A stretch of 64,000 nt of DNA from Azolla caroliniana. Lineage: Eukaryota > Plantae > Polypodiophyta. Made by a program: the position numbers and the translations under genes. Every line of letters starts with the position of its first letter. Positions within the stretch are counted from its first letter, which is position 1. Of this stretch, positions 1 to 34,838 are shown one piece after another. The stretch lies in contig JBHGNT010000013.1 in assembly GCA_043228905.1 (NCBI GenBank), positions 15,562,001 to 15,626,000 on the forward strand, read 5' to 3'. The notes below the pieces were generated by a model. That model saw nothing but the letters and a program-made list of their open reading frames with translations, did no database searches and had not been told where the DNA came from.

Positions 1-2575
1 GTCCGGCTTTTGTAAGTGTGAAGTCGTACACGATGATATCCACATCAGAGATATCAAGGGTCGAGGTGTTACGAATGTTTCGCTTCCTCTTCCTACCTCC
101 CCTTCTTGTTTGGCATTCAATCATCTCCAATGTATACTTACCTGTAAAAGCATTTGCACTTCTAGTGTTGTACCAATGAACATTTATAGACTTGATCGTG
201 CTATCTATTTCATGCATTAGCACTTCTAGAATTTTACCAACCCAAAATTGGTGGCCATGTGAGTTCTCATCAGCCGGCGTTGCAATCAACATCCCCGCGG
301 TGAGCTCTTGCAAATTTCCTTGCCATCTAGCTTCGGCTGCTTTGGTCATCCTTGGTCCCACATAAATGTCTCTTTGTTGTGGATGGACCAAGCTGTCATT
401 AATCGCATTTACTAGTCGCTCCGGACTTCTATTTACGCGATCATGTTGCAGCGACCATGTGAATGGCGTTTCCAAATTCCAATTATCAACAGATACACAA
501 TTGTCTATAATTTCTTTCTGATCACTATAAAATACATCCCACCATGACGTGTCTTGTTGTGCGGCATATTTCTTGGCGGCCTCAATATGTTTTCTTTTTT
601 CTTCTAAGGCTTGGAGCCATGACCGTTTTTGTTCTAATACCAAGTCGCTCTGCAACTGTCCTTTCTTCTCAATTGGCATTTGCTTAGCTCCATGGACAAT
701 TGTACTCGGCATACAAAGTAATAACTGGCAACCACCTTCAGGTTCCCATGTTGTAGAAGATGAATATTGTTTAGCATACAAAAGTGTAGAACCACTTATT
801 CCATTTTTCTTTATCAAAAAAATGTGATTGAAACTTATATTGTTTAACTGAGCAAGCACTTTAACATTCCCACCACCCCCATCTAATATATATCTCTTAA
901 AGTCATATACCTCCTTCAAGTGTAACACTTTTGGGCGTGGTGTATATGCATCACAAATGACATCAAATAGTTTAGGTAAAGTGAAAGCATCATGCCGAGA
1001 CAACTGTCTGGAGAATGTGCTAAACATCTGATCTATATGGTCATGTGTGTGGCCAACCAAAAGGAAATTGACTTTCACTTTCCTAAACAATTCTAGGTTG
1101 ACCAACATACTTAGATAGCCAAATACAGTTGAATTTTTGTTCTCTCTAGCAGTATTGTCCAATTGAATGTATAGAACAGGGGGGAAAGGTTGTCCCCAAG
1201 ACATCAAAACTCGGTGAATCACTGTAACTGTTAGGTTAGGGTCATTGTGAACATTGGGGTAAGTAATGAAGACGTGAGGTCGAACAGACCTATTATAAGC
1301 CAAGCATCCCACCAAGTGCATTTGAACAAGGCACTCATCATTGACATCTTTGGGGAGCCTCCGCATATGCGGCAAGCATGTCTTCTTCTGGTCCATGCCA
1401 TCTATCATTAAGCACATGTATTGTTCAGGCCTCTTCAAACACTTCTCTCTATGATGCATCGCCTTCCTTCGTTCTAAGGATTGTGCCTCACGATGCTCTT
1501 GTAGTAACTTCTTACTCGTATCCTTTTCCATTGATGTCTTTGCACCTTTAGCCAAACTTTTAAGATTTGCACAAATGGAGCAATAACCCATACGTACTTT
1601 ACGAGGAATAATAACATTTGAAAACCGAGCTCTCCATAATCTTGTGAATTGGCTATAGGTGATAGACTTATTACGTGAGCCCAGCATTTCAGATCGATAG
1701 ACATCATAAACTTCCCGACGGGTATAATTATCAGAAAGATGCATCCTACCTGTAGTGGGCATTACTTCACAATTTAACTGAAAGTAAGTTTTCATCCAGC
1801 CAATAGCTAGTCTTCCAATTGCACCTTTCATACTTGGAACCTCTTTACAATTGAGCATCTGATCCCCGCTAAGTAGACGTTGTTGTACTCTATGTAGCCG
1901 CATGTTACTAACACATAACACAAATTTGAATGCAACTCTACATATCTGTTGCGCATGGAAGATATAATACTCGAATGATACTTTGATCCCCGTACATTTG
2001 TCAGATACTAGTTGCATATGTGATCCGAGGTAAGTGTCTTGCTCATCACCGGTCATCGAAAAATAGTATCGCCTTAATTCTCGCAACTTTGATTTTCCAA
2101 TCATAGACATACAACCACGGGCACAACATATTTTGTTGACATCAAATCCAATCTGTTTATCTGATGTCACCAAGCTAAATCTAGCCAGACGAATTCTTCG
2201 TGGGATTCTTCTAATATGCATAGGGCTCCCAGATTTCTCTTCCTGCATAGAGGTTGGTGTAACCTTGTTACAGTCTAATTCTCTGTTCTGACCATCGCCA
2301 ATGTTATTCAATGTTTCCTGGGCACTTCCTTCATTCCCGGTATCTTTATTAATATCGTATTCTTCAATAGAGAACTCTTCACATGTGTCATTATTTGCAT
2401 TCCCTGTAGATGAGCTCAGACAATATTCTTCGATAGAATATGGTGAGTCGGTCGAAAGACAATATTCTTCAATCGAATATGGTGACTCTGTTGATAAACA
2501 ATACTCTTCAGTAGAAAACGATGGGTCTGATGACAAACAATATTCTTCAATCGAGAACGGTGAATCTTCACTCAT
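1..2575 (-). CDS. Sola1/DUF7869-like DDD transposase, >858 aa, 3'-partial (runs off the window; absent from the ORF track)
   Basis: ATG at 2575 (MSEDSPFSIEEY...). The same frame was confirmed at YIQLDNTARENKNS (~1180) and DIIVYDFTLTKAG (40-2). The motifs KVRMGYCSICANL, IDGMDQKKTCLPH and FLLVGHTHDHIDQMFS read in between. Clearly homologous to 11940-14587. Confidence 0.85.
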   Translation of the reverse strand, partial: MSEDSPFSIEEYCLSSDPSFSTEEYCLSTESPYSIEEYCLSTDSPYSIEEYCLSSSTGNANNDTCEEFSIEEYDINKDTGNEGSAQETLNNIGDGQNRELDCNKVTPTSMQEEKSGSPMHIRRIPRRIRLARFSLVTSDKQIGFDVNKICCARGCMSMIGKSKLRELRRYYFSMTGDEQDTYLGSHMQLVSDKCTGIKVSFEYYIFHAQQICRVAFKFVLCVSNMRLHRVQQRLLSGDQMLNCKEVPSMKGAIGRLAIGWMKTYFQLNCEVMPTTGRMHLSDNYTRREVYDVYRSEMLGSRNKSITYSQFTRLWRARFSNVIIPRKVRMGYCSICANLKSLAKGAKTSMEKDTSKKLLQEHREAQSLERRKAMHHREKCLKRPEQYMCLMIDGMDQKKTCLPHMRRLPKDVNDECLVQMHLVGCLAYNRSVRPHVFITYPNVHNDPNLTVTVIHRVLMSWGQPFPPVLYIQLDNTARENKNSTVFGYLSMLVNLELFRKVKVNFLLVGHTHDHIDQMFSTFSRQLSRHDAFTLPKLFDVICDAYTPRPKVLHLKEVYDFKRYILDGGGGNVKVLAQLNNISFNHIFLIKKNGISGSTLLYAKQYSSSTTWEPEGGCQLLLCMPSTIVHGAKQMPIEKKGQLQSDLVLEQKRSWLQALEEKRKHIEAAKKYAAQQDTSWWDVFYSDQKEIIDNCVSVDNWNLETPFTWSLQHDRVNRSPERLVNAINDSLVHPQQRDIYVGPRMTKAAEARWQGNLQELTAGMLIATPADENSHGHQFWVGKILEVLMHEIDSTIKSINVHWYNTRSANAFTGKYTLEMIECQTRRGGRKRKRNIRNTSTLDISDVDIIVYDFTLTKAG
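2413..2570 (-). repeat. 39-bp coding tandem repeat (13-aa unit, SP[YF]SIEEYCLS[ST][DE]) at the transposase N-terminus
   Basis: Four units of caata(t/c)tcttc on + at ~39-bp spacing, plus a further FSIEEYD near 2360. Confidence 0.85.
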
Positions 2576-3248
2576 GGCTTAAGGTCTAGATAGGGCTCTC
2601 TAAGTTATACTCCTCTCTAACCATATACTCCTCCCTAAACATAAACTTCTCTCTAAACAAAAGCCAAATCAATAGAATGTCTATATTATGTAATATTCTA
2701 TTAAAATACAATACATCTAAAAATTATTTTTAATAAAGTAATTTAACTTAAATTATCAATCATTATATAAACTAGATCTAAATGATGTTAAATCAAGTAA
2801 AATATAAAACTAATCATTAACAAGCCTTGAATATGTTGGATTAATGTTAAAATCATTGGCTAATTAATGACACCCATTTTGATATAGAACGTCTCACTCA
2901 TTGATTCTTTAATGCTCACCATTTTAAATATTAGACTTATCAATCATTAGTTAATTCATGCCCACATCTTTAATACATAACTATTGAGAGTCATAAAAAT
3001 TTTTGCTTTTAGTAATCAATCATTGGTACATTCATGAACCTCTATCATTGTCTCCTTCATAACCTTTGAAGTGATTGTAGGTTGTTATGACTATAAAAGA
3101 TTCATCAATATGTTAGTTTGACTTTGTAATCATTAATACAATCATAAGTTACTATAGTTAATGTGACTATGGTTACAAACTAACTATCCTCAAAGTTACC
3201 AACATTGGTTAAGATGACTATGGTTACTTTAACCATGGGTTCAATCCC

Positions 3249-3256
3249 TATAAATA
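3249..3256 (+). promoter_or_regulatory. TATA box of the ParB-MTase gene (copy 1)
   Basis: CCTATAAATAGG lies ~140 bp upstream of ATG 3390. An equivalent TATATAAG precedes the homologous exon in copy 2. Confidence 0.6.
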
Positions 3257-3389
3257 GGAAGACCTCATCATATTTCACTCACCAGAGTGTACAGAGCGTA
3301 CAGAGCACACAGAGCACACAGAGCACACAGAGCACTCAAGGCACAAAGCACGAAAGCGCGATCTCCGCCTCCACACAACACGATCAACC

Positions 3390-6300
3390 ATGTCTTCCAA
3401 GAGAGTCGAGCGCGAGGAGTCCAGGTAGGCCTCTGACACTGTGGACATTTTTGTAAATATGTTTCGTTTCCCAAGAACTCGATACGGCGTATCGAGTTCA
3501 TGTATACAATACAAATATTTATACACGAACTCGATACGGCGTATCGAGTTCGTGTGTAAATATTTGTATTGTATACATGAACTCGATACGCCGTATCGAG
3601 TTCGTGTTTAAAGTATAGGTTTTAAACATGAACTCGATACGGCGTATCGAGTTCCTGTTCATAGTGTAGGTTTTAAACACGAACTCGATACGCCGTATCG
3701 AGTTCGTGTTCACTTTAAACACGAACTCGATACGCCTTAAACACGAACTCGATACACTTTAAACACGAACTCGATACGGCGTATCGAGTTCGTGTTTAAA
3801 GTATAGGTTTTAAACACGAACTCGATACGGCGTATCGAGTTCGTGTTTAAAACCTACACTTTAAACACGAACTCGATACGGCGTATCGAGTTCGAGTTTA
3901 AAACCTATGTTTTAAACACGAACTCGATACGCCGTATCGAGTTCGTGTTTAAACTGTAGCCTTTGAGAGAGAAAAATCGTTTACGGGGTGGAAATGTTAT
4001 CAAATTGTCTGTCAAAATCAGTCTTTTTATTTTGAGTTTACTTACTTCTAAACAAATACATGCTCTAATTATAGGTGTTTTTTGACCTACTTTAGCTTAA
4101 AATAGTAGAAAATGATCTACAAATTGCATTCACTATGACAAATTCTCATCAATATAGGTTTAGAATCTATATAAGTCATACCTACTATTTAAAAGAATAT
4201 ATAACCCGTTTTACTTATTACGATATATATTTTCTAGGTTGAATAGCCCTGCCTAGAATAGATTTTTGAATATGTTACTGCTCCTAGAAACTGTTCTTCA
4301 TTATAATAACAACTTCAATCTACGTAACTGTCTAACTTATGTTTTTGCATATACTTTCTTAAATAGGTCGTTTGAGAATCTGTCAGACCGACCCGTGAAG
4401 AAAATTAAGCTTCGCATACAAGGTTCTCCAATTGAAGCCCAGACCAAGGTAACTCCGGAGACCATGAAGAGAGGAAAAAAGCTTCTCTTTAACGAAGAGA
4501 CAAAATCTCAGCCCCATAGTGATGTAAGCCAAAAGAAAATTGTCGCCGCTACTGGAGGCGAAGACCTTCCAGACCGAGATCTAACGGACAAGGAATGGTG
4601 TATGCAATATGTCGACTCAAAGAAAAAAGTCATATTGTATACAGCAAAGAAGAAGGGTGAGGGGCAGCTAGGAAAAGAAACTCCATTTATGTATGGCCGA
4701 ATTCTACGATTTGACTACGAAGATGCAGATTTGGCCAACATACTGGTAATGATAGAGTGCTCCAAGGGGGTACGCAGGGTGTTCCTTTCAGAAGATCTTT
4801 TAGTAAAGGAATCTTGTGGGTCTGAAGTGTTCAAAAAAGCACTTGATAACTCACAAAACCTGATTGTTACATTGAGGCCTTATATACAAGGCCATGTAAC
4901 TCTACGAGATGAAGAGCCCTCCCACTTGAAGGCCACTAAAAAGGTATCCAAAGTCCAGTCAAGACCAGCCAAGAAGAAGACAACGAAAATGTCGGATACG
5001 GATTCGACAAGTGAAAATGAAGAAGAGGATAATAAGGGGACGCCAGGAGCCGAGCTGGCCTCGGGTGTTTTGTCATCCGAGCATAATAAAATAAGAAGAG
5101 AGTTAATGCAACGGAAGCTGGTCAGGAAAGGGCAAGTATTTAATTTGCCTATAACACACATCCATCGGCCCCCTATTGATGAAAAAACAGGTCGAAGACC
5201 ACTTGAGATTAGAGAGCCTCATCGCATGCATGTTCAAAATCTCAAGAAAAAAATGAAAATTAATCCTCATGCCACAGTGGTGCCTTTTATTGTTATGGTG
5301 GATCCTGAAGAATGTGAAACCATTGAAGATTTTGATATCAGAAAGCATGATCAATATAATTATTTTGTCATTGGTGGATCGCATTCAGCAGAGGCACGTC
5401 GACAACTTGTAAGAGAACATCCAACCACTTTCTTCTTCAAGTATGCCGAGTGCAAAATATATGTTGGGCTCACAACCGAAGAGGCTAAGCTGTTGGCATG
5501 GGACCATAATAATGATAATGACTATAGGCAGAAAATGTCGTCTATTGAGCGTATCCGGTTCTTCCACCACGAGTATTTAGATGTGAAACAAAAGTTTGGT
5601 GTGAAGTTACATCCAGGCCTTCGACGTCAATGTCTGCATGAAGTCGGCATTGTGGTAGATGATAATGTTAGGTCCGATGGTCTTCGAAAGTATGAATCTT
5701 GGTTTCAATTGGCGTTTAGAGATGGAGAAGTATGGGACCTCCAAGATCAAATCTTCTCAATGTGGGAGAATAAGGAGGTAAAGGGTCAACGACAAAAGAA
5801 ATGTAGGGTTGACCCTCAACTAGAATTAAAGTCACAAGCCGCCAAGAAAATTGACTTGACAATTGAAGAAGCGGCAGACGACATGAAGCTGTCTCTATGG
5901 AGAGCGATGCAAGGTATTAAGGATGAGCAGCTTCTTGTGTCCGTTTTGTCAAGGGTTGTGGCGAAAGATTTAAGCCTTGAAGAAATGGTCACCGAGTTCA
6001 ATAAGTAAGTCTTTCAAATACTGAAATTGTAGTCTATCTGGTGTAATTCAAAGTTCTAATCTTGATTTCTAATTTTACAGTCATAAGGTGTACATGAAGA
6101 TCCAAGAAGTAATGATGAAACAACTTGGATGTATAACTTGGGAACAAGTGACCGAGGATTATCCTCTAACGTCTTCGTATAAGGCGTTATCAGAGTATTT
6201 TATTGCATTCAAGGATTGGGTTAGTATTGATATTTTTTCATTACCCTTTCATCATATGTAGAGGTTGTATAATAATACCTGATGTCCTATTGCTTCTATT

Positions 6301-7590
6301 AGAAACCGTGTCGAGGCAAGAAACAAGGAGAAGTTAAGGATATACACGATTTCCCTACATCCTTCCTTGCACATCTCGAGCGAGCCAGAAAAGAAAAGGA
6401 TCGTCGCTTAGTCAAGGCGTACGAAATGGAGGAAGATGGCTCGTTTAAAAAATTTAGCCACAAGAAAGATATTACGAGAGATCTTTACTACAATGTGGTT
6501 TGCGGTGATGTCATCGACTTGATCCAGAAGGTGCCAAAGAAGGAATATACGCTAATGATTGCGGATATTCCTTACGGATTTCGAATGGCTGGGTCATCAT
6601 ACGACGATGAACCGTTTAGGTTTAAACAATTGGAGAAGATGGTCAAGGATTTCGCTGAGCTAACGACCGCATCCTTGTGGCGAATAGTTGTCTTTCATAG
6701 TATGGACCAAGGGTACTCGGTAGCTCAAGCTTTGAGATCTTGTTGCCATGGCATCGAGAACCTTGCATTGTAAGGATTATTTATAGGTGTCTTTCATTAT
6801 ATTGCAATTCTTAAGGTTGTTGAATCTATTTTTAACTCGATGAATTATTTTTTATAGGATCAAGACCAATGTAAATAGAGGGCCAACTTTTCGGTTCGTT
6901 AATGCCATTGAATACATAACGGTTGGCTACTTCGATGAAATTAAAAAACAGAGAATCAAAGAGCATTCTAATGAAGTGGGAGGTTCAAATCTGTTGGTAT
7001 ATCCAGCAGTGACTCGGAAATTGCGACATGTCACCACGACAGAACGGGGACTTGTCAACCCATACCAAAAACCTCAACGACTTATGATGCGCTTGATCGA
7101 GATGTTTTCTGTCGAAGGAGACTGGATATTAGATCTCTTTTCTGGCACAGGTATTCCTCGAACTAGGGTAACGATCTTGAGATAACCAATCACTTTTTTC
7201 GTTTGACAACTAAATCTTCTTGTTACTTACATCATAGGAACTACGTCAGCATGTGCATTGAAGCTGTTTAGGAATACAGTTGCATTGGAGAAGGACGAGG
7301 ACCAAGTTATATTTATTAATATGCGGATTAAGGCTTTGTGGGAGTGCCCAGACCAGGATGAGGAGGTCGGTGCAAAGAACCTCGCCAATACAGAAAGGTT
7401 TCAACCCGCTTCGCGAGAGCCTATTCCTCCGTTAGCCGGCGAACCGGGAGAGCTAATAGAGCTTGATGATGAGCTTATAGAAGATATTTCGTTGGCCCGG
7501 CTAACAGGGGAAACCAATGCACGTATAGCCGAAGACAGTTCTACACAAGATGATGAAGAAAATGACGTAGATGAATTGATTGCTATGTAA
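3390..7590 (+). CDS. ParB/Srx-like domain fused to a beta-class N6-adenine/N4-cytosine DNA methyltransferase; 6 exons, 974 aa
   Basis: Exons 3390-3424, 4367-6004, 6081-6219, 6303-6769, 6858-7150 and 7238-7590 are all GT-AG and phase-compatible, totalling 2925 nt with no internal stop. The ParB-like core is PFIVMVDP...YFVIGGSHSAEARRQL...EAKLLAWDHN. MTase motif IV (LMIADIPYG) precedes NPYQKPQRLM and motif I (ILDLFSGTGTT...ALEKD), which is the beta-class order. Confidence 0.88.
3475..3952. repeat. Array of palindromes GAACTCGATACG-[G/C]-CGTATCGAGTTC, 9 full and 2 half copies, in intron 1 of the ParB-MTase gene
   Basis: Centres at 3487, 3539, 3591, 3642, 3693, 3779, 3830, 3881 and 3932 (spacing 52,52,51,51,86,51,51,51). 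Arms often extend to TTTAAACAC...GTGTTTAAA. Confidence 0.97.
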
Positions 7591-7769
7591 TAGACTCTAT
7601 AAAGAATATGACACTAACGATTTGTTAAGATTTCACATTATTAATACAAATTTTGGGTTTTACCTAGTGGATTCTATTCTTTATAATCATCTATATGTTT
7701 CAATTTTATTTTTATATACCTCATTAGTAGATTTATGATATTGGTTTCACCGCGTGCATAGCTGACTAC

Positions 7770-7873
7770 TGTCATGAACAGTACTGAGACAGAGAAGGAA
7801 TTAGTACTAAACGAAGGATTAGTACTATGAGAGGTGTGGAACTTCTTCGAGAGAAGGAAGAAGTGAGCAAGAC

Positions 7874-7944
<71 letters not shown>

Positions 7945-8226
7945 TGATAAGAAAGATATTTATTATATGAAGAGAATATACAACGGTGGCTAAAAGGCTT
8001 AAGACTGGCGTTGAACCAATTTGGTTCAACATAATGCCTAGTGCCCTCTTTTATAGTGTTTTCAGGAGTAATCCTGAAGCTTCTAGAATGTTCCAGAGAA
8101 ATCTGGAATATACACTAAAATGTAAATGAAAATAATATCCTACGTATTACAATAGATGGTCTAATGGTCAAGAGCTCGACCCATATAACCTAAGGTCATG
8201 GGTTCGAGTCTTGCCATATCATGACA
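7770..8226 (-). mobile_element. Solo LTR, 457 bp
   Basis: Termini TGTCATGA...TCATGACA; 5-bp TSD ACTAC at 7765-7769 and 8227-8231; internal (AG)n; TATA on the minus strand. Confidence 0.9.
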
Positions 8227-9084
8227 ACTACCAAACTTATGGAGAAACATGAACTAGCTTAAATGGAGGTTGATTTTGGTCCAAGCTAACCTTAACAGAA
8301 CATGGCCCTATAATTATTGCCATGACTGTCCATGTTGTTATTATGGATCTTTGTCTTATATTGTTAAAACTATTATGTTTCTATTCCATTGCTGCTTAGA
8401 TTGTGTAGTGTGTTGATAATGGTTCCAGTTGCGTTATCGTTCGGAGTTTGATCTTGTGTGAATCACCTAAGCAATAGAGTAGATCAATTTTAAATACAGG
8501 TATGAAAGCCTAATAGGTTTGTTATTTCCACGACATTATCCTAAAGTTCACTGCCTTACATTGTGCACAATTATATACACATATGGTTTGATCCCATATG
8601 AACAAACTGAGGAATAGATTAGATCAACTTTTAATATAAGTATTGAATACTTTAATAAGTTAGTTATTCCAATCACTTATCCTAATGTGCACTATCCTAC
8701 ATTTTCGACAATTACATACATGCACGTATGGGTCAAAGTATAAATTATATCTCATTTTATTAGTATGGATACAAGTACACCTCATAATTTTGTAAAACCT
8801 ACCTAATTAATATAAGTCTTTAAGTTAGTGTTTCCCTTGTCGCACAATAGTGCCATATTGAGCCATAGTTGAACTTTATTTAGATACATTAACTTATCAA
8901 CATGTCTAAACTTGCATGATTTCTAATGATCTCCACTCGTAGATCTATCATGTATTTTTATATTTGCAAATTCTTATCAAGTTGAGGAACATGTGATACT
9001 AGTGCATCCAATTATTGTAGAGAGGGTGTATTTGCTTCGTTTTAAGAAGATTCTACAAGTGGAATGCGCAATCCTTCCACTTGT

Positions 9085-11642
9085 GAACGCGAACGTGTTA
9101 GTGCCTTCTTGGTAACAGTTCGAGCATCTGGGATACTTCGCCATTGAAAACACTATAATGAAGCTGTTTGAAAGGATCAGACCTATGCAAAAAACTCTTT
9201 ACAGTCTCCGAATCCTCGGGCAGTTCCATTTCCTTCCCTTTGGTCATTCTCTTCTCATATTTCGCACGTTCTAAGTGCGTGATGAAGGCCGCTGGAATAC
9301 CGTCATTATTGTCGTTGTTCTTTTTCGATTTTGATGGTTTCTGCAAGTGTCATTGTTGTTAGCAGGGAACATTAATTTCTAACATATCAACATTCAAAAG
9401 ACACATACCCATTCTCTAAATACAATAAAATATTCCTCCAATGCCTTGTAGGAAGAAGTTATCGGGCAGGCTTGTTCAACTTCTTCCCATGTCGGTAAAC
9501 TCAGTTTTTGCATCATCAACTCCTGAATCTTCATGCATACCTTGTGACTGCACAATCAATATGAAATTAGAAATAAGATATTCAAAATAATTGAAGACTT
9601 TCATGAAAAGGTATACTATAAACACTTACTTTTGCAAGTCTGTTACCATCTTGTCCAAACTAAATTCCTTGGCGACCACTTGAGATAGCACGGATATTAA
9701 CAATCTATCATCTTTGATACCTTGTAATGATCTCCAAGGTAAAAGTTTCATGTCCTCTGCTAACTCCTCGATTACCAAGTCGCTTTTTCCCTTGGTCTTT
9801 GATTTCATCTCAACTTGTGGATCAATTCTTCCCTTTTTTTATCTTTGCCCCTTGACTTCTTTCCGCTCCCACATAGAGAATATTTTGTCTTGGAGATCCC
9901 ACACCTCTCCGGTCCGAAAAGCTAGTTGAAACCAAGAATCATATTTTCGGAGACCTTCGGATTTGGTACTCTCATCCACTGCAATCCCTACTTCCAATAA
10001 ACACTGGCGTCGCAATCCAGGCCACAATCTTGGACCAAAACGATTCAAGGCATCCAAGTATTCATGATGAAAAAATCTTATCCTCTCTATACATGACATC
10101 TTTTGCCTATAATCGTTGTCATTGTTATGGTCCCATGCGAGCAGCTTCGTCTCCTCGTGAGTTAGTCCTGCATATACCTTACATTCGGCGTACTTGAAGA
10201 ACGGCGTGAGAGGATATTCTTTGACAAGCTGTCGTCGAGCTTCGGCCGAATGTGATCCTCCGATTACATAGTATGTGTAATCGTCTGTAGAGCTATACTT
10301 GAAATCTGCTACTGTTGGGCATTGTTCTTGATCAACCATTACCAAAAATGGCACCACAGTAGCGTGAGGATTGATTTTCATTTTGCTTTTCAGGTTTTGC
10401 ACATGGACGGAGTGCGGCTCCCTAATTTCCAAGGGCCGTCTTCCAGTCACGAGGTCAATGGGGGGCCTTTGGATAGAAGTAATGGGCAAATGAAATAGCT
10501 GGCCCCTGTGCACAAGTTTAGTCTTCACAATATTTTCTCTTATTTTATTTTGTTCTGATGTCAGGACACCAGAAGATAGTTGTCCGCCTGGAGCCACGAC
10601 GTCGACTTGTTGGTCGTCTTCTTCTTCCACGAACTCTAATATTTCTTCTTCTTCTTCTTCGGGTCGTGGTCGTTTAGTATATTTCTTTTGAACAGGATTT
10701 GTCTTCCTAGACTTTTTCGGTGGAGTTTCTGCTTCACCGGTCATCATCTCTCCTGTCACGTACGGCCGAAGAGCTACCGACAAGTTATTTTTCGTTTGCA
10801 GGTCTTTACGCAAAGCCTTGGGATTGCAAGATTCGGGTACTAGGTTTCCCTCATCAAGTCGCAATCGCCTGTTGCCAACTGAGCTCGAGATGTCGATTAA
10901 AATACATGTAGAATCAATGTCTTCGTACTCTAGCTTGGTTACATGCCCGTAATTAAATGTTTTTCCAAGCTGAAGTTTCCCTTCCCCGTCCGATTTTGCC
11001 GTTATCAATAACAACACCCCATCCTCCTCGACATAAGAGAGACACCATTCAAGTTCGGGGTAATCCTTATATTTCACGTCAACCGTTTTCTCCTCTTGCG
11101 TACTACCTTTGTTGATTTTGGTAGTAGCCACAGATGACTTGGATCCTCCTTCCCCCGTTGAGTCAAATAAAATCTTTTTACTCATGTCCTTGATAAAGGA
11201 GCCAGATTCTCATTTTGTCGGAGATCGAATCTTCAATCTAAATGAAGGAACTTTTTGTCTGGTTTCACTGAAATTAAAAACGTTGGTGAAAACATAGAAA
11301 CAACGTACAATTTTATCTAAATCACGCAAATTATCATTTAAATTACGTCAATTTTATGGTCCCATGCGATAGTTTTTTATCGCAAAAACAACATTGTTTT
11401 CAACCAAAATCCGATGCAGTGCATCAGATTTGCGTTGAAAGGCAGGACCTTCAACCAAAATCCAATGCACTGCATCGGATTTTGGTTGAAGGTCCTGCCT
11501 TTCAAAATTGCTTTCCAAGTTCATTGTACAAAATAAAATAAAATTTCTATGTGTTGAGGAAAGGAATCTTTAAGGAATCTTTAGGAATCTTAAAAAATGT
11601 AAAGAATATTACTAACCTGATGATTTTCTTTCCCTTGTTCAT
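9085..11642 (-). pseudogene. ParB-like/MTase gene, copy 2: premature stops, truncated just before MTase motif IV
   Basis: Exons 11642-11617, 11267-9630, 9547-9409 (139 nt, as in copy 1) and 9340-~9085 share intron positions and phases with copy 1. In-frame TGA at 11212-11210 and TAA at 9841-9839 (CAA in copy 1). Homology ends after VFNGEVSQMLELLPRRH. Confidence 0.88.
11399..11505. repeat. Two palindromes AATCCGATGCA-[G/C]-TGCATCGGATT, 51 bp apart, in intron 1 of copy 2
   Basis: Centres at 11419 and 11470, each with one mismatch. The second lies in a 71-bp inverted repeat at 11435-11505. Confidence 0.92.
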
Positions 11643-11758
11643 GGTTCGTGCCGGAGGTAGTGCTGTCGACGATGTGCTTCTGAGTGCTCGAAAATTGGCC
11701 TGTGCTCTGAGCTCGATGGATTCTTTCACGTGATAATGAAAATGAAATTTCTAACCTC

Positions 11759-11767
11759 CTTATATAG
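11759..11767 (-). promoter_or_regulatory. TATA box of the ParB-like gene (copy 2)
   Basis: CTATATAAG on the minus strand, ~120 bp upstream of ATG 11642. Confidence 0.55.
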
Positions 11768-11939
11768 AAGACTTTAGCATTCCTTTTAAAATAAAAAATA
11801 ATTTTTAATTATTTGTTTTTTAGGAAAATTTCGGAAAATAATATAGTTAATCTAAGTGTTCGGGTAGTTATATAGTTAGGCTTTAGCATTCCTTAATTTT
11901 CTCAAAAGAAGGTTTTAGAATACAGTTAGACTCCCTCAA

Positions 11940-14587
11940 ATGTCTTCTTCTACAAGTAGAACATCTCTTTTTTCTATTGCCCCCTTTTCATTATCAGACA
12001 ACTCGTATTTCTCAATAGAAGAGTACGACCACAAAAAACATTCGCGGCTTAAACAGAAAAGTGTGGCTCCTAGTACTTCGAATTCTCTGTTTTCAATTGA
12101 TCTTGTTGATGGCTCTCTTCATGCAAGCTTACAAGCGGACAATTCTTCGTCGATAGATAATAATAGCATTACTAAACCTCTAGCATTTAAAAGAGTTCCT
12201 CGACAAGTTAGTGAAAAGAGATTTAATTTCTTATGTTCTAATCGTCAACTTCTATGCGACTTGAACAAATCGTGTTGTGTGAATCTCTGTCTATCAACTT
12301 ATGGAAAGTCAAGGTTACGTGAAACACGACAAAAATACTTGTCGCTTAATGGGGAAGAGCAAGATACATTTCTTCTTGCGCATATGCAACTTAAATTGGA
12401 TCACAAAGCAGGGCCTAATTCAACGCAAGTTGAATATTTCCTTGGACTAAATACCAAGTGTTGTCGAGCAGCTTTTAAAATCACTCATAACATTGGAAAT
12501 ATGCGGCTACAACGAGTTCAAGAGCGACTTCTGAAGGGCTCCTGGGTACAGTTCGATCAAAATGGTTCTGGATGTAAGGGTCAAATTGGGCAACAGGCAA
12601 TTAGGTGGATGGAGGTATATTTTTCAAAACAGTGCGAAGTTATGCCAACGACAGGAAGACTTCATTTGTCAGATAACTTTACTCGAAGGGAAGTTTACCA
12701 ATCGTACAAGGACGACATGTCTTCTGATGTTGAGCCTTACATACAGTACATGCATTTTAATCGACTATGGAGGTTACAATTTAATAACGTGGTTATCCCA
12801 CGAAAGGTGCGAGTTTAAAAAGTATGGCCAAGGGTGGAAAATCAGATGTAGAGATCAAGAATTACAAGAACCTGTTAAAAGGACATTGTGAAAGTCAGGC
12901 ATTGGAACGTACTAAGGCTATGCATCACCGACAAAAAGCGTTTCAATCTCCCGAAAAGTATATGTGCATGATTATTGATGGCATGGATCAAAAGAAAACT
13001 TGTTTACCGCATTTTCAAAGACTCCCCAAGGATATTGGAGATGAGTGTCTCGTGCAAATGCATCTAGTGGGTTGTTTGACATATTGTCAAACTATAAGAT
13101 CGCAAGTGTTCTTAACTTATCCCAATATCCACAACGACCCTAATCTTACTGTCACTGTCATGCATAGGGTATTGCAATCATGGTCAGGTATACTCCCGCC
13201 AGTTCTATATGTGCAACTAGACAACACAGCAAGAGAGAATAAGAACTCAACTGTCTTCGGCTATCTAAGCATGCTAGTAGAGAGGGGCATATTTAAAAAG
13301 ATAAAGGTTAACTTCTTGTTGGTTGGTCATACCCATGATCACATAAATCAAATGTTCAGTAGGTTCTCAAAGAAACTTGCTCGCTGCAATGCTTTCACAC
13401 TTCCCACGCTATCCAAATTGATTAGTGAAGCATATACACCAAAGCCTGAAGTACAACACTTGGAAGAAGTATACGACTTTAAACGTTTCTGCATGGATAG
13501 TGACGGGACTAAAGGTAGGGTGCTTGCACCTCTTAATAATATAAGTTTCAACCATGTCTTCCTCATAAAACAAAGATCGGCCCACCTGAAGATGATGGTG
13601 TTGTTTGCGAAACAATACTCATCTAGTGCACAATGGGAGCCCCAAGAAGGTTGTAGGCTCCTTCTTCATATCCCAGATGAACCTCTACATGGTGCACAAC
13701 AAATGCCATATGATGATCGTAAAAATGTAGCACCAAATAGTACTATTGATGAACAAAGGGCATATTGGTTGAGATGTCTAGCAGAGAAACAAAATAATAT
13801 TGATCGGACTAAGAAGTATGCCGGTGATGAGGATGTTGAATGGTGGGAGATTTTCTTCACCAATCAACGCACCATTTTAGATAATTACATCGCCGGTTTA
13901 TGGCCAATCCATATCCCATTCACATGGAACATTGGGATGACATCAACGATATCGCAGACTCATCACCAACAATCGAATAATATGGAGCTTCATGATTTAG
14001 TTCAGCCACTGCAAAGAGATATTTATGTGGGACCAAGAAAGTCACGTACTGTTGAGGCAAGATGGCAAGGTAATTTGCAAGAACTACAAGTGGGAATGTT
14101 GGTTGCAACATTAGCAGGGGACGATACCTTGGGCCATCCATTTTGGATTGCAAAAATTATTGAATTAGTAAGGGATGAAGAAAGTAGTCAGACAAAGTCA
14201 ATAGTAGTCCACTGGTATCAGACAAATTCACCTGATGCATTTACAGGAAAGTATTCTTTAGAGATGGTTAAGGATGTCGGATGTTCAAGCAGAAAGAGAA
14301 GAAGAAAGAATATACCAAGCACGGCTACTCTCGCACTAGACCGTGTTGACATACTAGTATATGACTTCTCATTGACAAAATCAGGTCATCTAAGACAAGC
14401 AACTATCAAGATAATAAAGGAGAAAATCCCAAACATGGTGTCAAACGAAATACAGAGAATAACCAGAAGCAATTCTCATAACCACAAAGATGTTGGGTTG
14501 GAATTGGATGAGGATAATGCTTTGATTGCCACTGATGATGAGGATGAGACGTCAGAATGCTCTTCTAGTCCATCAGACATGTCTTAA
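11940..14587 (+). pseudogene. Sola1/DUF7869-like transposase, copy 2, frameshifted at ~12812
   Basis: ORFs 11940-12818 and 12824-14587 together match the single ORF of copy 1. Motifs DGMDQKKTCLP, DNTARENKN and GHTHDHINQ (D>N relative to copy 1). Confidence 0.88.
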
Positions 14588-14899
14588 TATATTGGTTTGG
14601 TTCAAGCTGGGGATTGTTTTACTACATGATCGGAAACTTTGTAAATTTGTTTTGGATGTAAACTCACGAATATGTATAATTGTAACTGGTAGACATGTTG
14701 TACATTATTTTGTAATTTTGGTGATGTATTTTTGGAGGCATTTTACTTATGCCTCAAAGCGGTAGTCATGTTGAAATTCAATATATTTTGCCACCTTTTC
14801 TGAAAAGCTTTACGCATGCGTCGTGTCTTTTTGAAAACTGCGTGCTTTTGTGCCCTTTTTCGACGTAGTGTTCTCATAATGCGACATATTACCTGTTTC

Positions 14900-15184
14900 A
14901 AATGACCCGGTGTTTTGTGTCTATCATGTCCTGAGCCGTGTTCTCATCTCCGTTCTAATCTGGTTTTGTGTGTATCCATGCGTGTGGTCTCGTGAGCTCG
15001 TTGTTTGCGGCTATCGGTCCGGAGCAACATTTGTCTCTAAGCCGAGCACTCACCAAGAATCGATCCGGACCGGATACATGTCTGGGAACTGATTCGGATA
15101 ACCTTCCCTCTATCGCCGGCTCCTTGGTCTGAGACCCCGGTGGTCCCGCCTCGATTCAACACATACCCGCGGAAGATCGCGACA
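14900..15184. mobile_element. LTR fragment related to the 30016-34838 LTRs (inverted)
   Basis: GAGACCCCGGTGGTCCCGCC and terminal CGCGACA match the reverse complement of TGTCGCG...GGCGGGACCACGGGGGTCT. Left boundary uncertain. Confidence 0.4.
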
Positions 15185-15799
15185 ATGTCAGAATGTTATC
15201 GTCTTAAGACATCAGCGTTGCAAGTTATTCTTTTGTCATGATGATCATATTGCCTCTTCTAAGGTACTAGTCATCCTGAGATATGTTGATATGGGATGTC
15301 AGTGGTAGGTTGACTGTGTCTTGATCATACCTTGTATTTCTTACTCCTTGTTAATATACGTTTGAGTCCTTTTATTTTCCTATCTATCTTGTGTCTCTTC
15401 TTTCCTCTTTCACATACACATAACACACATCTCTAATCTATTCCGCATAACATAATTACTCTAGCTAATTATTTACATGGTATTAGAGCACGTGGTTTAG
15501 CATATCCACTAAGCCCACCCAACTTATAGTGATTGTGTGTTCGATACACCGATGGCAAATCCGACTATCTGTTATCATAGTGCCACTACATAGCTCGTGT
15601 CTAAGGAAGACGAAGAAGAAGGAAATCTTTATTGACATAATGAATACTCAAATACGGAGCTCTCTCCCTAGCAAGAAGTTGGACCGAAACAACTTTACAT
15701 CTTGGGAGTACAAGATGCACCAATACCTTGTCAACCAAGGTTATTGAAGCTACATCAAAGGAGCTCAAGAAAACAAACCCGACCCAACATGGGAGCAAG

Positions 15800-17661
15800 T
15801 GTCATAGACGTAGATGAGGGCAAGGACAAGTAGGCGAGCTCAATATTAACAAAGAGAGAAAGATAGATATATAGATAGAGAGGAGCATAGACAAGAGAAC
15901 AAGAGAGAGAGAGGGTAGACAAAAGACCGAGAACTTAATTATGCTTCCGTAACTGGTGTTGTTCACCTTGATTGTAATCAAGGTGCACCAAAGTATTTAT
16001 ACAAGAATGTGGTGGTATGCATGTAAGCTAGGAAACATCTAGAGAATGCATGGAAACTTCTAGAGAGTGCATGTCTATGCATTCTCTAGAAGTTTCTTGA
16101 AAGTTCTAGTGATTAACTTACAATGTAATAAGTTGAAACTTATACAATACAATAATGCATAGATGGAATGTACCTCCATTGGTAAGATTTCCCAATAAGA
16201 CCAAGAGGTCATGGGTATAATGTCGTGTCTATGACATTATCCTCCCTCTAAGGCCGCCTCCCGGGACTCGCGGCTGGCTTATGTGGGTATCGTTGATGAA
16301 AAGCGTGAATGGCCTCCGGAGCATTTTGTAAATGTGTAACTGGTGTCCAAAATGGGGTAACCTTTCCATAAGACCAAATATTGGAGCTATCGACGCCGAT
16401 ATCGAGAGTCGAGGATTTGGTCAACCTCATATTCTTCGCCGTCGACAATTCCACAGGTGGCGGTGGAGGAGGGTGTCGTCCTGGAATTCGAGAAGGATGG
16501 TAGAGTTCGAGGAGGAAAACGTGAAAAACATCGTGAATACTGAATGTTGGAGGAATTGCTAACCAGAAGGTGACTGGGTTGATCCGCTCGATGATACAAA
16601 AGGGGCCTAGTCTTTTGTAGTCCAATTTTGCACAAGGACGTGTGGTGGCAATGTGACGACGTAACAACCAAACCATGTCCCCGATTACAAACGTTGGTGT
16701 AGCTAAGTGATATCGGTCTACTTGATCTTTATAGTGGTCACCAACAACACAGTGCTCCAAGGAGAGGTCATAATGGACATCGTGTAAAGCGCGGACACGC
16801 GTCTTTGCCGAAGGATTGACCGAAGTTGCAGGTATGGAAATGCTGAAATGAGGGTGAAATGCATAGTTTGCAAAGAAGGGGGAAACCTTAGTCGAAGCAT
16901 GGATACTATTATTGTAAGCAAATTCCACCATTGCAAGGAAGTTCACCCAATCCTCCTGTTGGTAGCTCACGGTAAACTGAAGGTATTGTTCGAGAATTTG
17001 GTTGACTCGCTCCGTTTGTCCATCAGTTTGAGGATGGTATGTTGAGGACAAGTTAACAAAAGTCCCGAATGTTTGTAGAAGTCGTCGCCAAAAGTGGGAA
17101 ATGAACTGAGAACCTCGATCAGAGGTGATATCCTCGGGTAAGTCGTATAATCGAACAACATTTTAAAGAAAAAGATCAGTTGTCTTTTCCCCGGAAATGG
17201 TTTTGGAACATGGAACAAAGTGAGTCATCTTCGAAAACCAATCGACAATGTCATGTCCACCAACCAGAGAGAGGACGGTAATAAAGTCCATGGATAGAGA
17301 GACCCATGGTCGACGTGGAATGGGGAGCGGGTGGAGAAGACTGTTGAGAGATCAAGCTCAATTTAGTTTAGGTAGTTAGTCAACAATGTAACTTCGTAGT
17401 TACCTAGATAGACTCTAGTTAGAAGCGTTGACTATAACGCCTTAAATAGGATCTTGTACTTAAGTGGGATATTCTAGATCCTCCACTCCCAAGTACATTT
17501 AATATAGGACTTACACCTTTGTACCTATATTATCCTCACACGTGTGCACCCTTGCACATGAGATCTATATATACCTCATTGTAGGTATTTTTGTTTTTGA
17601 TAATGTTGATGCTAATTTAATATATAGTTACTCATCCCCCATCTTGTATTGTTAATAAGTG

Positions 17662-17697
<36 letters not shown>

Positions 17698-20600
17698 TCT
17701 CTCACACATACACACACATATCACATAATCTTCCGCACTTAACTCAATCACATAATTAGGTACTAATTAACTCATAATTACTTACCTAATTCTTAACATG
17801 GTTTCAGAGCATGTGGTTTAGAAAATCCACTAAGCCCACCCGACTCCGTGATTGTGTGTTCGAGATGCCGACGACAAAATCTAGCTATCCGCTACCGTAG
17901 TGCCGCTACGTAGCACGTATACATGATCAAAGGAAGAAAACCAAAAAGAGAAGACACTAATCAACATGAACACACAAATGGGTATCTCGCTCCCTAGTGA
18001 AGCGCTAGACCGGAGCAATTATTTATCTTGAGAGTACAAGATGACCCAATACCTCGTCGGACAAGGGTATTTGAGCTACATCAACGGTGCTCAAGAAAAT
18101 CGACCCGACTTGAAAAATGCCAACTATCCAACATGGGAGCAAGCGGCGAGTCAAGCCATGTATTGCTTGGCAACATGTGTCCACGACCACATGCTTAGCC
18201 ACATTCGAGATGCCAAGACACCCAAAGAGAGGTGGGAGAACTTAGAGAAAATGTTCGCCGCCAACACGACCGCTTGAAAGCTTCAACTCTGACAAGAGTT
18301 GAACAACATTCGGCAAAAAGACATGTCCGTGTCGGACTACACCGCCAAGATCAAAAGCATTTGCGACTCTCTTGGGTCCATCAAAATAAACGTCGACGAA
18401 GACGAGATGGTTCAAGTATGCTCGGGCGGCCTCGCACAACGGTTCGATCCATTACAGACGACAATCTTGGCGAGAGAAAACCCTCCATCATTCTTCAACC
18501 CCCACCAATCAATGCTATTGGTCAAAGAGAACCACGTCCGAACCAAAAGCAAGACGTTGGAAGGACAAATGTTCTTCTCGAATTCGGACAGTAGCCGAGG
18601 AGGAGGTCATGGTGGTAGAAGAGGTCAATTCGACCCATCACGCGAAGGGAACTCAAACCTTCACGGAAGCCATCGAGGAACCTTCGGAAGAAGGGGGAGC
18701 TTCCACGTCGAACATGGTCGGCAAATGAGACCCGCAACTTGCAATTATTGCGGCAAAATCGGTCACTACGAGGCGGAGTGTCGGAAAAAGAGAAGTGAGT
18801 CGGCTTCAACAAGTCGACACCTCACAAACTACGCATCGAACTCCGACCACGACAAACGTAGCGGAATGTTCACGAATTGCGCATCGAAATCCGCTTAGAC
18901 GATCATAGTGAAATGTATAAAATTACGCCCCAAATTCCAACTACGGCAACCATGGCGGAATGTTCGTAATGAGGCATAGAGCGAACTCTATGATGGCCTC
19001 CAACTCCGCAAGCACCTCCAACTCGGAAGACGTGTGGTTCGTTGATTCTGGTGCCTCACATCACATAACATCTCACGAAGAGTGGTTTCGTGATTTATGA
19101 ACGCTGGATCGACCCGACTTCATAGAGACGAGAGACGACACCACGCACCCCATTCGGCACATCGGCCATGTCCCATTCGAGAAAGAAGGCAAGCAAACTT
19201 GCATCAAGATTGTCTTGCACGTGCCCACAATAACGAAGAATTTGGTCTCGGTCGGCCAAATCGTGGAGGAAGGCATGTAAGTCCGCTTCAACAACGAAGG
19301 TTGTTTCATTGAGAAAGATGGCCGACTCATAGCTAAGGGGTGGAGAGACGGCCAAATGTTCATCCTCGATTCGAACGAGGTGAAATCAGTAATGTACGCC
19401 AAAGGTCTCAAAATCAAGACAAGTATCGAGTTGTAGCATAAGAGAATTGGCCACATAAACCTCCAACGGCTACGAGCAATGCAAACCAAGGGAGTCATCA
19501 TCGGACTTCCGACATTCGAGTCGACCGAGTATGCGAAGCGTGTCAACTCGGCAAACAACATCGACTCCCATTCCCGAAGGAGAGCTCCGCAAGCAAAGGC
19601 CTCCTCGACGTCGTACACTTGGATGTATGGGGACCGGCTCAAACGCCAACGATCGGCGGATGCCGATACTACGTAACCTTCATCAACGACCACTCGCGCT
19701 ATGCGTGGATCTACCTGATGAAGAAGAAGAGCGAAGTGTTCTCCCACTTCCAAAAGCTAAACGGGCAAGTCGAAAAAGAAACCGGTTGGCACATTCGATG
19801 CCTACGATCGGATGGAGGCAAGGAGTACTTCTCCGATAAATTCACCTCCTACCTCCAAAGTGAAGGCATTTGAAGAGAATTCTCGTGCCGACACGCACCC
19901 CAACAAAATGGAGTGGCCGAAAGGAAGAATCGACAAATACTCGAGGTAGCACACGCCATGATGCATGAGAAGCATATGCCGAACTTCTATTGGGCCGAAG
20001 CGGCATCCACGACCGTCTATCTCATGAACCGGTGCACCACCAATGGAGTCCATGAGCTAACTCCCTACGAGCTCCTCGTCGGAAGGAAGCCGATACTGTC
20101 GCACCTCAAGGTGTTCGGAAGCATTGCAAATGTACGCATCCCGAACGAACAACAATAGAAGCCCGACGCGAAGTTGGAGGAATGTATCCTCATAGGATAC
20201 TCATCCGAGAAGAAAGCATACAAGTGCTACAACCCTTCTACCCGAGTGGTTTGGGTAAGTCGAGACGTAGTCTTCGACGAGTCTGCATCCTGGTATGCAC
20301 CAGAGATAACTTCGACTCCGACTACGCTCAACCTGGAATTCGCCAAACAAGAGGTAGAAGATGGAGATAGCTTCAAACACATGTTCGAAGAAAGTCTGAT
20401 TATGGCAAGGCCTAGTGGGCCACAAGAGCCCCCACGCGGCCCAAGAACGTTGTGGCCAAGTACGAACTTGGACAAAGGCAAAGGTAAGATGCCCGAATAT
20501 GAAGTCGACCACCCCGACGACAATGATTCGGATGGATCGACTCTCTCACTAGACAGTGAGTTCGGTGTACCCATCATGCGTACACCCGAAGTAAAGAAGG

Positions 20601-21252
20601 CGCTCACATCGGCGAGCGAAAAACTTCGACGCTAATCTAGAGAGAAGAATTCCGTCACTCGGCTTGGCTACGAGTATATGGCCCATCATTACACATTCAC
20701 GATGAAGGTAGCGGCCGAACAAGAGCCCAAGAGCTCCACCGAAGCGGCTCATAACCCACGATGGGTGGAAGTAGTTGATCTTCGCCCACACACTCCAAGC
20801 CTTCGTTACCGGCTTGAGGGGGAGGAACCGAGATTGCCACGACGAAGAAAGCCGAAGGCCGGTCGGAAGCACACAAAGCCGACGAAAGCCAAAGCGGATG
20901 TCAGACACCTCACACTTGAGCTTGAGGGGGCGTATTGAGAGATCAAGCTCAATTTTGTTTAGTTAGTTAGTCAACAATGTAACTTCGTAGTTACCTAGAT
21001 AGAATCTAGTTAGAAGTGTTGACTATAACGCCTTAAATAGGATCTTGTACTTAAGTGGAATATTCTAGATCCTCCACTCCCAAGTACATTTAATATAGGA
21101 CTTACACCTTTGTACCTATATTATCCTCACACATGTGCACCCTTGCACATGAGATCTATATATACTTCATTGTAGGTATTTTTGTTTTTGATGATGTTGA
21201 TGCTAATTTAATATATAGTTACTCATCCCCCATCTTGTATTGTTAATAAGTG

Positions 21253-21309
<57 letters not shown>

Positions 21310-26500: not shown

Positions 26501-26872
26501 CCACAACCATGGAAATTGGTCAAAGAGTTTGTTAAGTCATGCGACGTTTGTGCTCATTCTAAAGCATCTCATCATCGACCATATGGTCTCCTTCACCCTC
26601 TCCCAATCCCCAAACGGCCTTGGGCCTCTCTTTCCATGGATTTCATCATTGACCTTCCCTTTCTTGGTGGTTATGACTCGGTATTCGTCATGGTCGATCG
26701 CTTCACCAAGATGGCTCATTTTGTTCCATGTGCCAAAACCATTACTAGAGAGGAGACAACCGATTTATTTTTCAAAAATGTGGTTCGACTACATGGACTC
26801 CCGAACGATATCACTTCTGATCGAGGTCCACAATTTGTTTCCAATTTCTGGTGGCGCCTTCTACAAACCTAC

Positions 26873-34672: not shown

Positions 34673-34703
<31 letters not shown>

Positions 34704-34838
34704 GGATGTGCGTACAACCACATCACCTTTATACCTTTATTACTATTACGAATACATTATGTACGCGTGCAACGTTGCACATCGCTCTTTGGCTCTCGTT
34801 GCTCGGGTTTCCACTTGTGGACGAAAATCTTCATGACA
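30016..34838 (-). mobile_element. Non-autonomous LTR retrotransposon (LARD-like; gag-like 5' end plus GC-rich repetitive ORF, no pol)
   Basis: Near-identical LTRs at 30016-30692 and 34149-34838; flanking ACGG duplication; PPT-like GGTGGGGGCGGA next to 30693; PBS at 34127-34144; gag-like FLGAYKAEM...ESWESFEGALLEAY. Confidence 0.9.
34127..34144 (-). promoter_or_regulatory. Primer-binding site complementary to tRNA-Trp
   Basis: TGGTGAACCCGACGTGAA, 4 nt from the 5' LTR, matches the 3' end of plant cytosolic tRNA-Trp (...UUCACGUCGGGUUCACCA) as recalled from memory. Confidence 0.8.

Follow-up and report, generated by a model that had tools for sequence, protein, structure and literature searches.

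Can a DNA transposon of a land plant carry, besides its transposase, a gene for an enzyme that methylates DNA? This question is raised by a stretch of 64,000 nucleotides (nt) from the fern Azolla caroliniana (assembly GCA_043228905.1, contig JBHGNT010000013.1, positions 15,562,001 to 15,626,000 of the forward strand), which is called the window here. An initial annotation, made from the letters of the sequence, described its first part as two diverged copies of a plant transposon family, in which a gene for a Sola1-like transposase faces a spliced gene for a ParB-like protein with motifs of a DNA amino-methyltransferase (MTase). As set out below, the locus is best explained as an autonomous two-gene transposon, and it seems, on balance, probable that its ParB-MTase protein binds palindromes within the element and methylates the DNA of the element, likely at adenine. 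It is contested whether functional N6-methyladenine (6mA) or N4-methylcytosine (4mC) exists in plants, and which enzyme would be its writer. In the family discussed here, ferns, a liverwort, Ginkgo and Chara have a tangible candidate for such a writer, conserved and present in multiple copies, which makes the question directly testable.

Positions 1-14914 of the window are occupied by two related elements in opposite orientation, and in each of them a transposase gene of the DUF7869 family faces a ParB-like gene, as the initial annotation had proposed. Its two-copy description was correct in that both copies are present, but they are not simple neighbours: copy A (1-9099; >9.1 kb long, with its left end beyond the window start) is nested in copy B (9100-14914), an older element. 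The right terminal inverted repeat of copy A (9063-9099, minus strand; read inward, it starts AACACGTTCGCGTTCACAAGTGG) has 37 nt in common with the left end of a related element at another locus, L002. The terminal repeat of L002 is present once in the window, at 9079-9099 (minus strand) with one mismatch, where 0 occurrences are expected by chance. The repeat of copy A ends at 9099, which is the exact breakpoint of MTase exon 3 of copy B. The 5' part of this exon (9101-9349, minus strand) halts after ...ELLPRRH at the junction with copy A, whereas the intact relative L005 goes on with YTLLIADIPY. Since a terminal repeat abuts a broken exon, copy A has transposed into MTase exon 3 of copy B. 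Thus, the MTase part of copy B was not lost through decay, and the remainder of this copy must sit to the left of the window start.

Copy B and L005 share 98.3-98.6% identity over positions 9100-14913 of the window (5968 down to 181 in L005). Its terminal inverted repeat on the transposase side (14882-14914, minus strand; inward, A-ACACCGGGTCATTTGAAACAGGTAATATGTCG) recurs unchanged at either end of L005, as well as at those ends of L006 and L007 that could be seen. The feature therefore extends to 14914 and does not stop at 14587, where it had been annotated to end. Beyond the insertion, copy B is damaged by an in-frame stop codon at 9839-9841, within exon 1 (9629-11185, minus strand) of its ParB gene (11185-9101, minus strand), and by a frame break near 12818-12824 in its transposase gene. 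Copy A is intact as far as the window reaches; the window holds one end only of each copy. The two copies are alike at 68-70% of DNA positions, in the coding parts only, and at 40-65% of protein positions, depending on the segment, which points to old, separate lineages within one family. The 3' non-coding tail of copy A (7591-9062) measures ~1.5 kb, versus 0.5-0.8 kb in L002 and L005, and contains a (GA)n run at 7849-7950. It may hold a small insertion; ARAGORN detected no tRNA in 7500-9200.

The transposase gene of copy A (2-2578, minus strand) is open over 859 codons, with its 3' end cut by the window edge, and its product matches Pfam DUF7869 (PF25273) with E 1.6e-51. That of copy B (11940-14587, plus strand) lies in two frames as a consequence of the break mentioned above, and matches the same family with E 1.7e-51. 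The transposase is assigned by its match to the Pfam family DUF7869, and 'Sola1-like' can stand as a putative label only. No mention of DUF7869 was found in open-access text. The 5' coding part of the copy A gene contains a 39-nt tandem repeat (2420-2551, minus strand) encoding SIEEY-type peptide repeats with the unit D-S-P-Y-S-I-E-E-Y-C-L-S, and this peptide motif is repeated fewer times in copy B. At the C-terminal side, a conserved block W-Q-G-N-L-Q-E-L ... F-W-[VI]-[GA]-K-I ... V-H-W-Y (2-700 in copy A, 13900-14400 in copy B) resembles a small β-barrel domain of the chromatin-reader type (BAH, Tudor or chromo-like); Pfam gave no match in this block.

The second gene of copy A, on the plus strand, runs from an ATG at 4464 to 7590 in five coding exons. 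Three parts of the protein come from exon 1 (4464-6004): a PH-like domain at the N-terminus, the basic/acidic linker after it, and the region with the ParB/Srx fold. Exon 1 is followed by exon 2 (6081-6219), by exon 3 (6303-6769) with MTase motif IV, A-D-I-P-Y-G-F, at 6561-6581, by exon 4 (6858-7150) with NPYQKPQ, the S-adenosylmethionine (SAM)-binding motif DLFSGTG and a match to Pfam PF01555, and by exon 5 (7238-7590), where the MTase fold is completed and an acidic tail leads to the stop codon. The four introns (76, 83, 88 and 87 nt) are all canonical GT-AG, and the frame stays open throughout, in agreement with the earlier judgement that this copy is intact. The predicted protein is shorter than the 974 residues given before, since the coding sequence that starts with the ATG at 4464 comprises 2793 nt (930 codons). 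The first two exon junctions give the same residues as the Ceratopteris gene model P0019, and the last one restores the classic continuation of motif I, G-T-G-T-T.

The two genes form one mobile unit. The same head-to-head layout is found at L002, L004, L005, L006, L007 and L010, at L009 on a chromosome record of Ceratopteris richardii (CM035423.1) and at L011 on a chromosome of the liverwort Riccia sorocarpa (CM100795.1), with R1sor_010795 and R1sor_010796 as the annotated neighbours. At every fern or liverwort locus with enough flanking sequence the genes are linked, with the exception of one truncated Ceratopteris copy. Inverted repeats enclose both genes at five loci: L005 (181 and 7772; 37 nt, 97% complementary; element of 7.6 kb), L004 (1741 and 8188; 6.4 kb), L002 (288 and 8838; 8.55 kb), L010 (4643 and 12445; 7.8 kb) and L009 (3572 and 13067; 9.5 kb). 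These terminal repeats are 21-37 nt long and start with AACAC at all ends. With blastn-short, the repeats were not found at the Riccia locus or at L009, and the ends of L009 were located through comparison with L001. These two independent Ceratopteris insertions are 90% identical through ...GTGTT and unrelated beyond, and the terminus is fixed by the point where their similarity stops. Between the terminal repeats of L005, L004, L002 and L010 there is no further gene, and no ParA partner. At the Riccia locus, a second DUF7869 gene (18543-21752, minus strand) lies 5 kb downstream of the ParB-MTase gene and may belong to another element or to a nested copy. The linkage and the common termini anticipated in the initial annotation are thus both observed, and the shared terminal inverted repeats and the nested insertion identify the family as transposons.

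Whether the tree is built from the transposase core or from the ParB block, the nearest neighbours are the same: copy A groups with L002, and copy B with L005 and then L004. In both trees Riccia is a distant outlier. Each tree comprises eight rows and leaves several forks unresolved; the resolved parts of the two are congruent. In the ParB and MTase exons, nonsynonymous differences (pN) amount to 0.03-0.35 per site as compared with saturated synonymous differences (pS) of 0.7-1.0. As pN is far below pS, both modules have been maintained by strong purifying selection while the lineages diverged.

The target site can be partly delimited. L009 lies inside an (ATCT)n microsatellite, the phase of which is unbroken across the element, so that a target site duplication of 0, 4 or 8 bp is allowed, and one of 2, 3, 5-7 or 9 bp is excluded. 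The host microsatellite, (ATCT)n/(ATGT)n, is very long (2974-3572 and 13068-15800 of the L009 locus on CM035423.1). Duplication of TA, which precedes 6 of 11 ends, was rejected because the in-phase tetranucleotide repeat at L009 excludes 2 bp, and TTAA was rejected as the two bases before AACAC vary. The flanks of L010 show no 4-bp repeat; the contig is possibly chimeric. For Sola1, the target site duplication is said to be 4 bp in the 2009 description by Bao and colleagues.

The enzyme module is recognizable by sequence. Exon 4 alone scores 33.9 bits against Pfam PF01555 (N6_N4_Mtase; cut-off 26.7). The exons of copy A were analyzed singly, and the whole MTase is represented by the contiguous homologue models P0155, from Ginkgo, and P0174, which score 65.7 and 39.9 bits, respectively; exons 3 and 5 singly gave no Pfam match. 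A profile of exon 4 from six loci matches M.MboIIA, M.RsrI, DpnA and CcrM at the motif preceding the SAM-binding loop, and the Ginkgo homologue matches M.MboIIA (6e-7), M.RsrI (8e-7) and CcrM (5e-6). Among PDB sequences, the exon 3 profile reached CcrM only at a non-significant E of 1.5. A word-indexed search with the Ginkgo MTase region retrieved only Ginkgo paralogues and one ENA protein, and is uninformative on bacterial kin and on MpDN4MT1 of Marchantia. The three motifs reported initially are all present in copy A, i.e., DIPY at 6564-6575, QKP at 7066-7074 and DLFSGTG at 7132-7152, and A-D-I-P-[YH]-G, N-P-Y-Q-K-P-Q and D-L-F-S-G-T-G are invariant across the fern lineages. Elsewhere, motif IV reads A-D-I-P-Y-G-F in Riccia, and C-D-F-P-Y-G-F and F-D-L-P-Y-G-F in Chara, where MTase exons 3 and 4 are nearly contiguous. 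Motif IV precedes motif I, in copy A as well as in P0174 and P0155, which is the permuted order of the β-class. Together with the PF01555 match above the cut-off, this order bears out the proposed amino-MTase, and the gene is predicted to encode a β-class DNA amino-MTase module with its catalytic and SAM-binding motifs kept. Canonical versions of motif IV are DPPY for N6-adenine and SPPY for N4-cytosine MTases. The motif found here keeps the Asp, the second Pro and mostly the Tyr, with the first Pro replaced. Because of this Asp, and because the nearest solved relatives are adenine MTases, N6-adenine is the more likely target base.

The ParB-like region, which follows the basic/acidic linker, is the most conserved block of the protein. 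An AlphaFold2 model of exon 1 residues 194-514 has a predicted local distance difference test score (pLDDT) of 81, and all top Foldseek matches of this model are ParB, Noc, KorB or Srx (E 1.7e-5, probability 1.0), which agrees with the ParB-like assignment made before. By VIA, it resembles Myxococcus ParB (Z 10.9), PadC (Z 9.9), KorB (Z 8.5-8.7) and Arabidopsis sulfiredoxin (Srx; Z 7.7, 27% identity). The model thus predicts the ParB N-terminal, Srx-like fold. The preceding N-terminal domain (residues ~34-147) is predicted to form a β-barrel with two helices, with a core pLDDT of ~90. Foldseek yielded no match for it, and its best VIA matches are the SANTA domain of M18BP1 (Z 6.5) and then PH domains (Z ~4.5). 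On this model, it may be called no more than PH-like. Pfam on the whole of exon 1 gave a sub-threshold match to DUF6551 (E 0.026) as the sole match, and a sequence comparison of exon 1 with the PDB gave chance matches only.

Arrays of palindromes lie between the divergent genes. In copy A (3472-3964), ~10 units with a 51-nt period have the core CGATAC-GSC-GTATCG, and all 9 matches to CGATRC-N(1-5)-GYATCG in the 64-kb window fall in this array, where 0.02 are expected by chance. Copy B contains two 51-nt units (11399-11500) with the core CCGATGCA-G-TGCATYGG. No fern lineage lacks palindromes upstream of its ParB gene; the core is shared, and the arms differ from lineage to lineage. There are 8 copies at 51-nt spacing at L008, 8 copies at L002, 3 at L010 and 1 each at L005, L006 and L007. 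At L009 in Ceratopteris there are 23 matches with ~31-nt spacing, both in front of the gene and within intron 2. This second array, besides the upstream one, is located at 5574-5864 in L009 and at 11796-12056 in L001. Riccia has palindromes with another core (arms GGAYTGTATKC) in the same relative place, ~300-400 nt upstream of the annotated start. Since the arrays lie inside the element and their motif is absent from its termini, they look like predicted sites for an element-encoded dimeric DNA-binding protein. The 6-mer AACACG, which the terminal repeat of copy A shares with its palindrome unit, is regarded as chance, since it is not seen in other lineages.

The family is present in ferns and a liverwort, and probably in Ginkgo and Chara. 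A profile of the ParB block found 750 clusters at E <=0.001 among 1.84 billion representatives, 72 of them below 1e-30. Named long members come from Ginkgo, Chara braunii, Adiantum and Riccia, and PF01555 was recognized in 4 of the 10 long members scanned. All named ParB-MTase relatives are streptophytes, as expected of a plant-borne element, and the nearest named relatives of the window proteins are from ferns, with 55-60% protein identity. DUF7869 is spread more widely than the ParB-MTase gene: its hosts include ferns, Riccia, Chara and Ginkgo, and also bivalves, echinoderms, amphioxus and one hemichordate. At an oyster DUF7869 locus, no ParB-MTase gene was found within 10 kb.

How might such an element work? 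The product of the first gene would be a DDD/E-type transposase acting on the terminal inverted repeats that start with AACAC. The second gene, in opposite direction and with four introns, would yield one protein, in which a PH-like domain, a ParB/Srx-fold and helical region and a β-class SAM-dependent amino-MTase are combined. Its ParB-like part may bind, as a dimer, the palindrome array upstream of its own gene. This binding would hold the fused MTase on the element, which could then methylate the element and its neighbourhood, more likely at N6 of adenine. The mark, or the bound protein, might adjust how strongly the two divergent genes are expressed or when transposition takes place. The bacterial insertion sequence IS10 is under Dam control, and by analogy the mark or the bound protein could instead couple transposition to replication. 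Self-recognition, escape from silencing by 5-methylcytosine and control of transposition, which the initial annotation put forward as purposes, would be candidate roles of the mark.

Several observations weigh against this reading. Instead of the canonical DPPY or SPPY, motif IV has the form D-[IFL]-P-[YH], with D-I-P-H in Ginkgo and L003. Moreover, PF01555 enzymes have changed repeatedly between 6mA and 4mC, and the domain does not reveal the specificity (PMC8885841). The arginine of the GxxR nucleotide-binding motif of ParB is absent; the stretch reads V-I-G-G-S-H-S-A-E-A-R-R, with G-G-C-H-S at the corresponding position in Ginkgo, and G-G-S-H-S resembles the G-G-C-H-R motif of Srx instead. 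Because this arginine is absent, a ParB-type CTP clamp appears unlikely. The helical region (model residues 164-321) matches the Spo0J-parS complex (Z 5.1) and a ParB DNA-binding domain (Z 3.5) only weakly, and the palindromes could be bound by the transposase or a host factor instead. With respect to linkage, L001 lacks the transposase side, and the Chara locus L012 holds two or three ParB-MTase copies with no transposase within 45 kb. In the latter (BFEA01000570.1), an annotated 'gene' of 30 kb and 1825 residues fuses at least two of these copies (8187-10058 and 34019-35941). Finally, several of the ENA loci may be from the species of the window or from close kin, and they are to be counted as independent insertions or lineages and not as hosts.

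The same evidence can be read in other ways. A more far-reaching version of the self-methylating transposon is possible, though rather unlikely. The element would then be a self-targeting epigenetic module of phage origin, in which a ParB-like reader of a parS-like array nucleates 6mA or 4mC over the element, and it might serve as a reservoir for host enzymes such as the 4mC MTases of Marchantia sperm. If this were true, the family would constitute a dedicated mobile source of non-5-methylcytosine (5mC) DNA methylation in land plants.

The protein could also be a KorB-like regulator. The ParB part would chiefly repress or activate the divergent promoter, with the palindromes as operators and both the transposase and its own gene under copy-number control, and methylation would be secondary or reinforcing. 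KorB is known to bind palindromic operators in RK2 promoters. Consistent with such a role, the palindromes lie between the divergent genes in all fern lineages and in Riccia, and this ParB-family repressor is among the structural matches mentioned above. However, invariance of the MTase motifs over saturated synonymous divergence would be needless if methylation were dispensable, and the Ceratopteris arrays in intron 2 are not in promoter positions. This role is judged unlikely as the main one. It is more doubtful still that the protein is an accessory transposition factor that methylates no DNA, the MTase-like module being inactive or having another substrate, and the ParB/Srx fold acting as an NTP-binding or nicking module that helps the element to be excised, to choose its target or to stay tethered after excision. 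The variant motif IV, D-I-P-Y or, in some lineages, D-I-P-H, would fit this idea, as would the missing P-motif arginine in a fold resembling that of the ATP-binding Srx. Furthermore, DAM domains borne by transposable elements yielded no 6mA in E. coli (bioRxiv 10.64898/2026.05.21.726589). Yet neither the SAM-binding motif nor NPYQKPQ varies, active DNA adenine MTases are the proteins matched best by sequence, and the fusion partner and the domain order are as in phage DNA MTases (PMC12704722). Very improbable, and for ferns and Riccia largely refuted, is the view of the ParB-MTase gene as a passenger, or as a domesticated gene of the host, that happens to be located beside DUF7869 elements or was recently captured by them and plays no part in their life: the Chara locus, one Ceratopteris locus and the oyster locus show one gene without the other nearby, but five loci have both genes inside shared terminal repeats, the two gene trees are congruent, liverwort and ferns have the same layout, and L001, as it shares its terminus with L009, is an element that was truncated rather than a gene of the host.

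Outside the two elements, the window contains long exons of two paralogous ABC transporters (37433-39367 and 54732-56633, minus strand; ABC_membrane and ABC_tran, E ~1e-43), which lie ~17 kb apart and look like a tandem duplication of a host gene. Remnants of a Ty3/Tf2-type retrotransposon, with integrase SH3, integrase H2C2 and rve core domains, are found at 16248-17051 and 26177-26938. Between 30000 and 34000, the G+C content rises from the ~40% seen elsewhere to 56-61%, and both GC skew and AT skew are strongly negative. Long open frames occur on either strand of this segment, with 513 and 415 codons for those on the minus strand, and they match no Pfam family.

Parts of this architecture are familiar from other systems. 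The transposon itself has likeness to Sola1 (Bao et al., 2009), compared here by description only: large elements, a DDD-type transposase and terminal inverted repeats. The reported hosts of Sola1, Physcomitrella and bivalves (PMC9033089; PMC10294476), can be set beside the bryophytes, bivalves, echinoderms and amphioxus that carry DUF7869. In open-access text, no report of a second gene in Sola1 elements was found, nor any paper linking Sola1 or another DNA transposon to a ParB-MTase gene. This agrees with the suggestion in the initial annotation that the architecture has not been described before.

The closest parallel to the second gene is found in phages and plasmids. Fusions of a ParB fold with an N6_N4 MTase are enriched in and typical of phages (PMC12704722), and ParB-Tls loci have been described as well (PMC4738411). 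The likeness consists of a ParB/Srx fold followed by a β-class amino-MTase on a mobile element. In the ESM Atlas, the nearest non-plant look-alikes are phage ParB_N + N6_N4_Mtase clusters (scores 0.86-0.87), which serve as a lead only. In contrast to these fusions, the fern gene is a eukaryotic gene in a cut-and-paste transposon, with four spliceosomal introns, a PH-like domain, a long basic/acidic linker and a helical region, and the likeness seen to phage proteins is one of architecture. KorB and the ParB-parS systems share the ParB-family fold, the clustered palindromes near the own gene and the variation of the sites by lineage. Here, a ParA partner and the GxxR arginine are lacking, no C-terminal dimerization domain is seen, and the sites are predicted ones. 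Through this family, eukaryotic chromatin would also acquire a module of the ParB type together with palindrome arrays that match it. Should the arrays indeed be bound by the ParB part, plant nuclei would already contain a working pair of protein and site that is compact, programmable and of bacterial ancestry.

Permuted, bacterial-type β-class amino-MTases are also known as host proteins in eukaryotic nuclear genomes. The bdelloid N4CMT, an N6_N4 MTase fused to a chromodomain, makes 4mC (PMC8885841), and so do the products of the Marchantia host genes MpDN4MT1a/b, which have the motif TSPPY (bioRxiv 10.1101/2021.02.12.428880). The enzyme discussed here differs from both by D-I-P-Y, the ParB partner and its location on a transposon; MpDN4MT1 is set apart by description.

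Mobile elements of other types have acquired DNA-modifying enzymes too. Among retrotransposons, DAM occurs in DIRS and LTR elements and DNMT in Gypsy and DIRS elements (bioRxiv 10.64898/2026.05.21.726589; PMC4738411), and DAM-LTRs are reported to be absent from Streptophyta (bioRxiv 10.64898/2026.05.21.726589). These elements resemble the fern family in that a prokaryote-type DNA MTase is kept by selection in a transposable element. However, they encode an α-class DAM or a C5 DNMT within polyproteins, whereas the ParB-fused β-class MTase is encoded by a separate gene; with its terminal inverted repeats, DUF7869 and another MTase class, and without a reverse transcriptase, the fern family does not belong to the retroelements. 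Another precedent comes from basidiomycetes, in which KDZ transposons are, as reportedly noted by Iyer and colleagues in 2014, linked to TET/JBP genes. There, too, a DNA transposon family travels with the gene of a DNA-modifying enzyme, but this enzyme is a dioxygenase acting on 5mC, the transposase is of another superfamily, and the hosts are fungi. Thus, transposon-carried DNA-modifying enzymes, known from retrotransposons and the fungal KDZ/TET elements, now reach the cut-and-paste elements of land plants.

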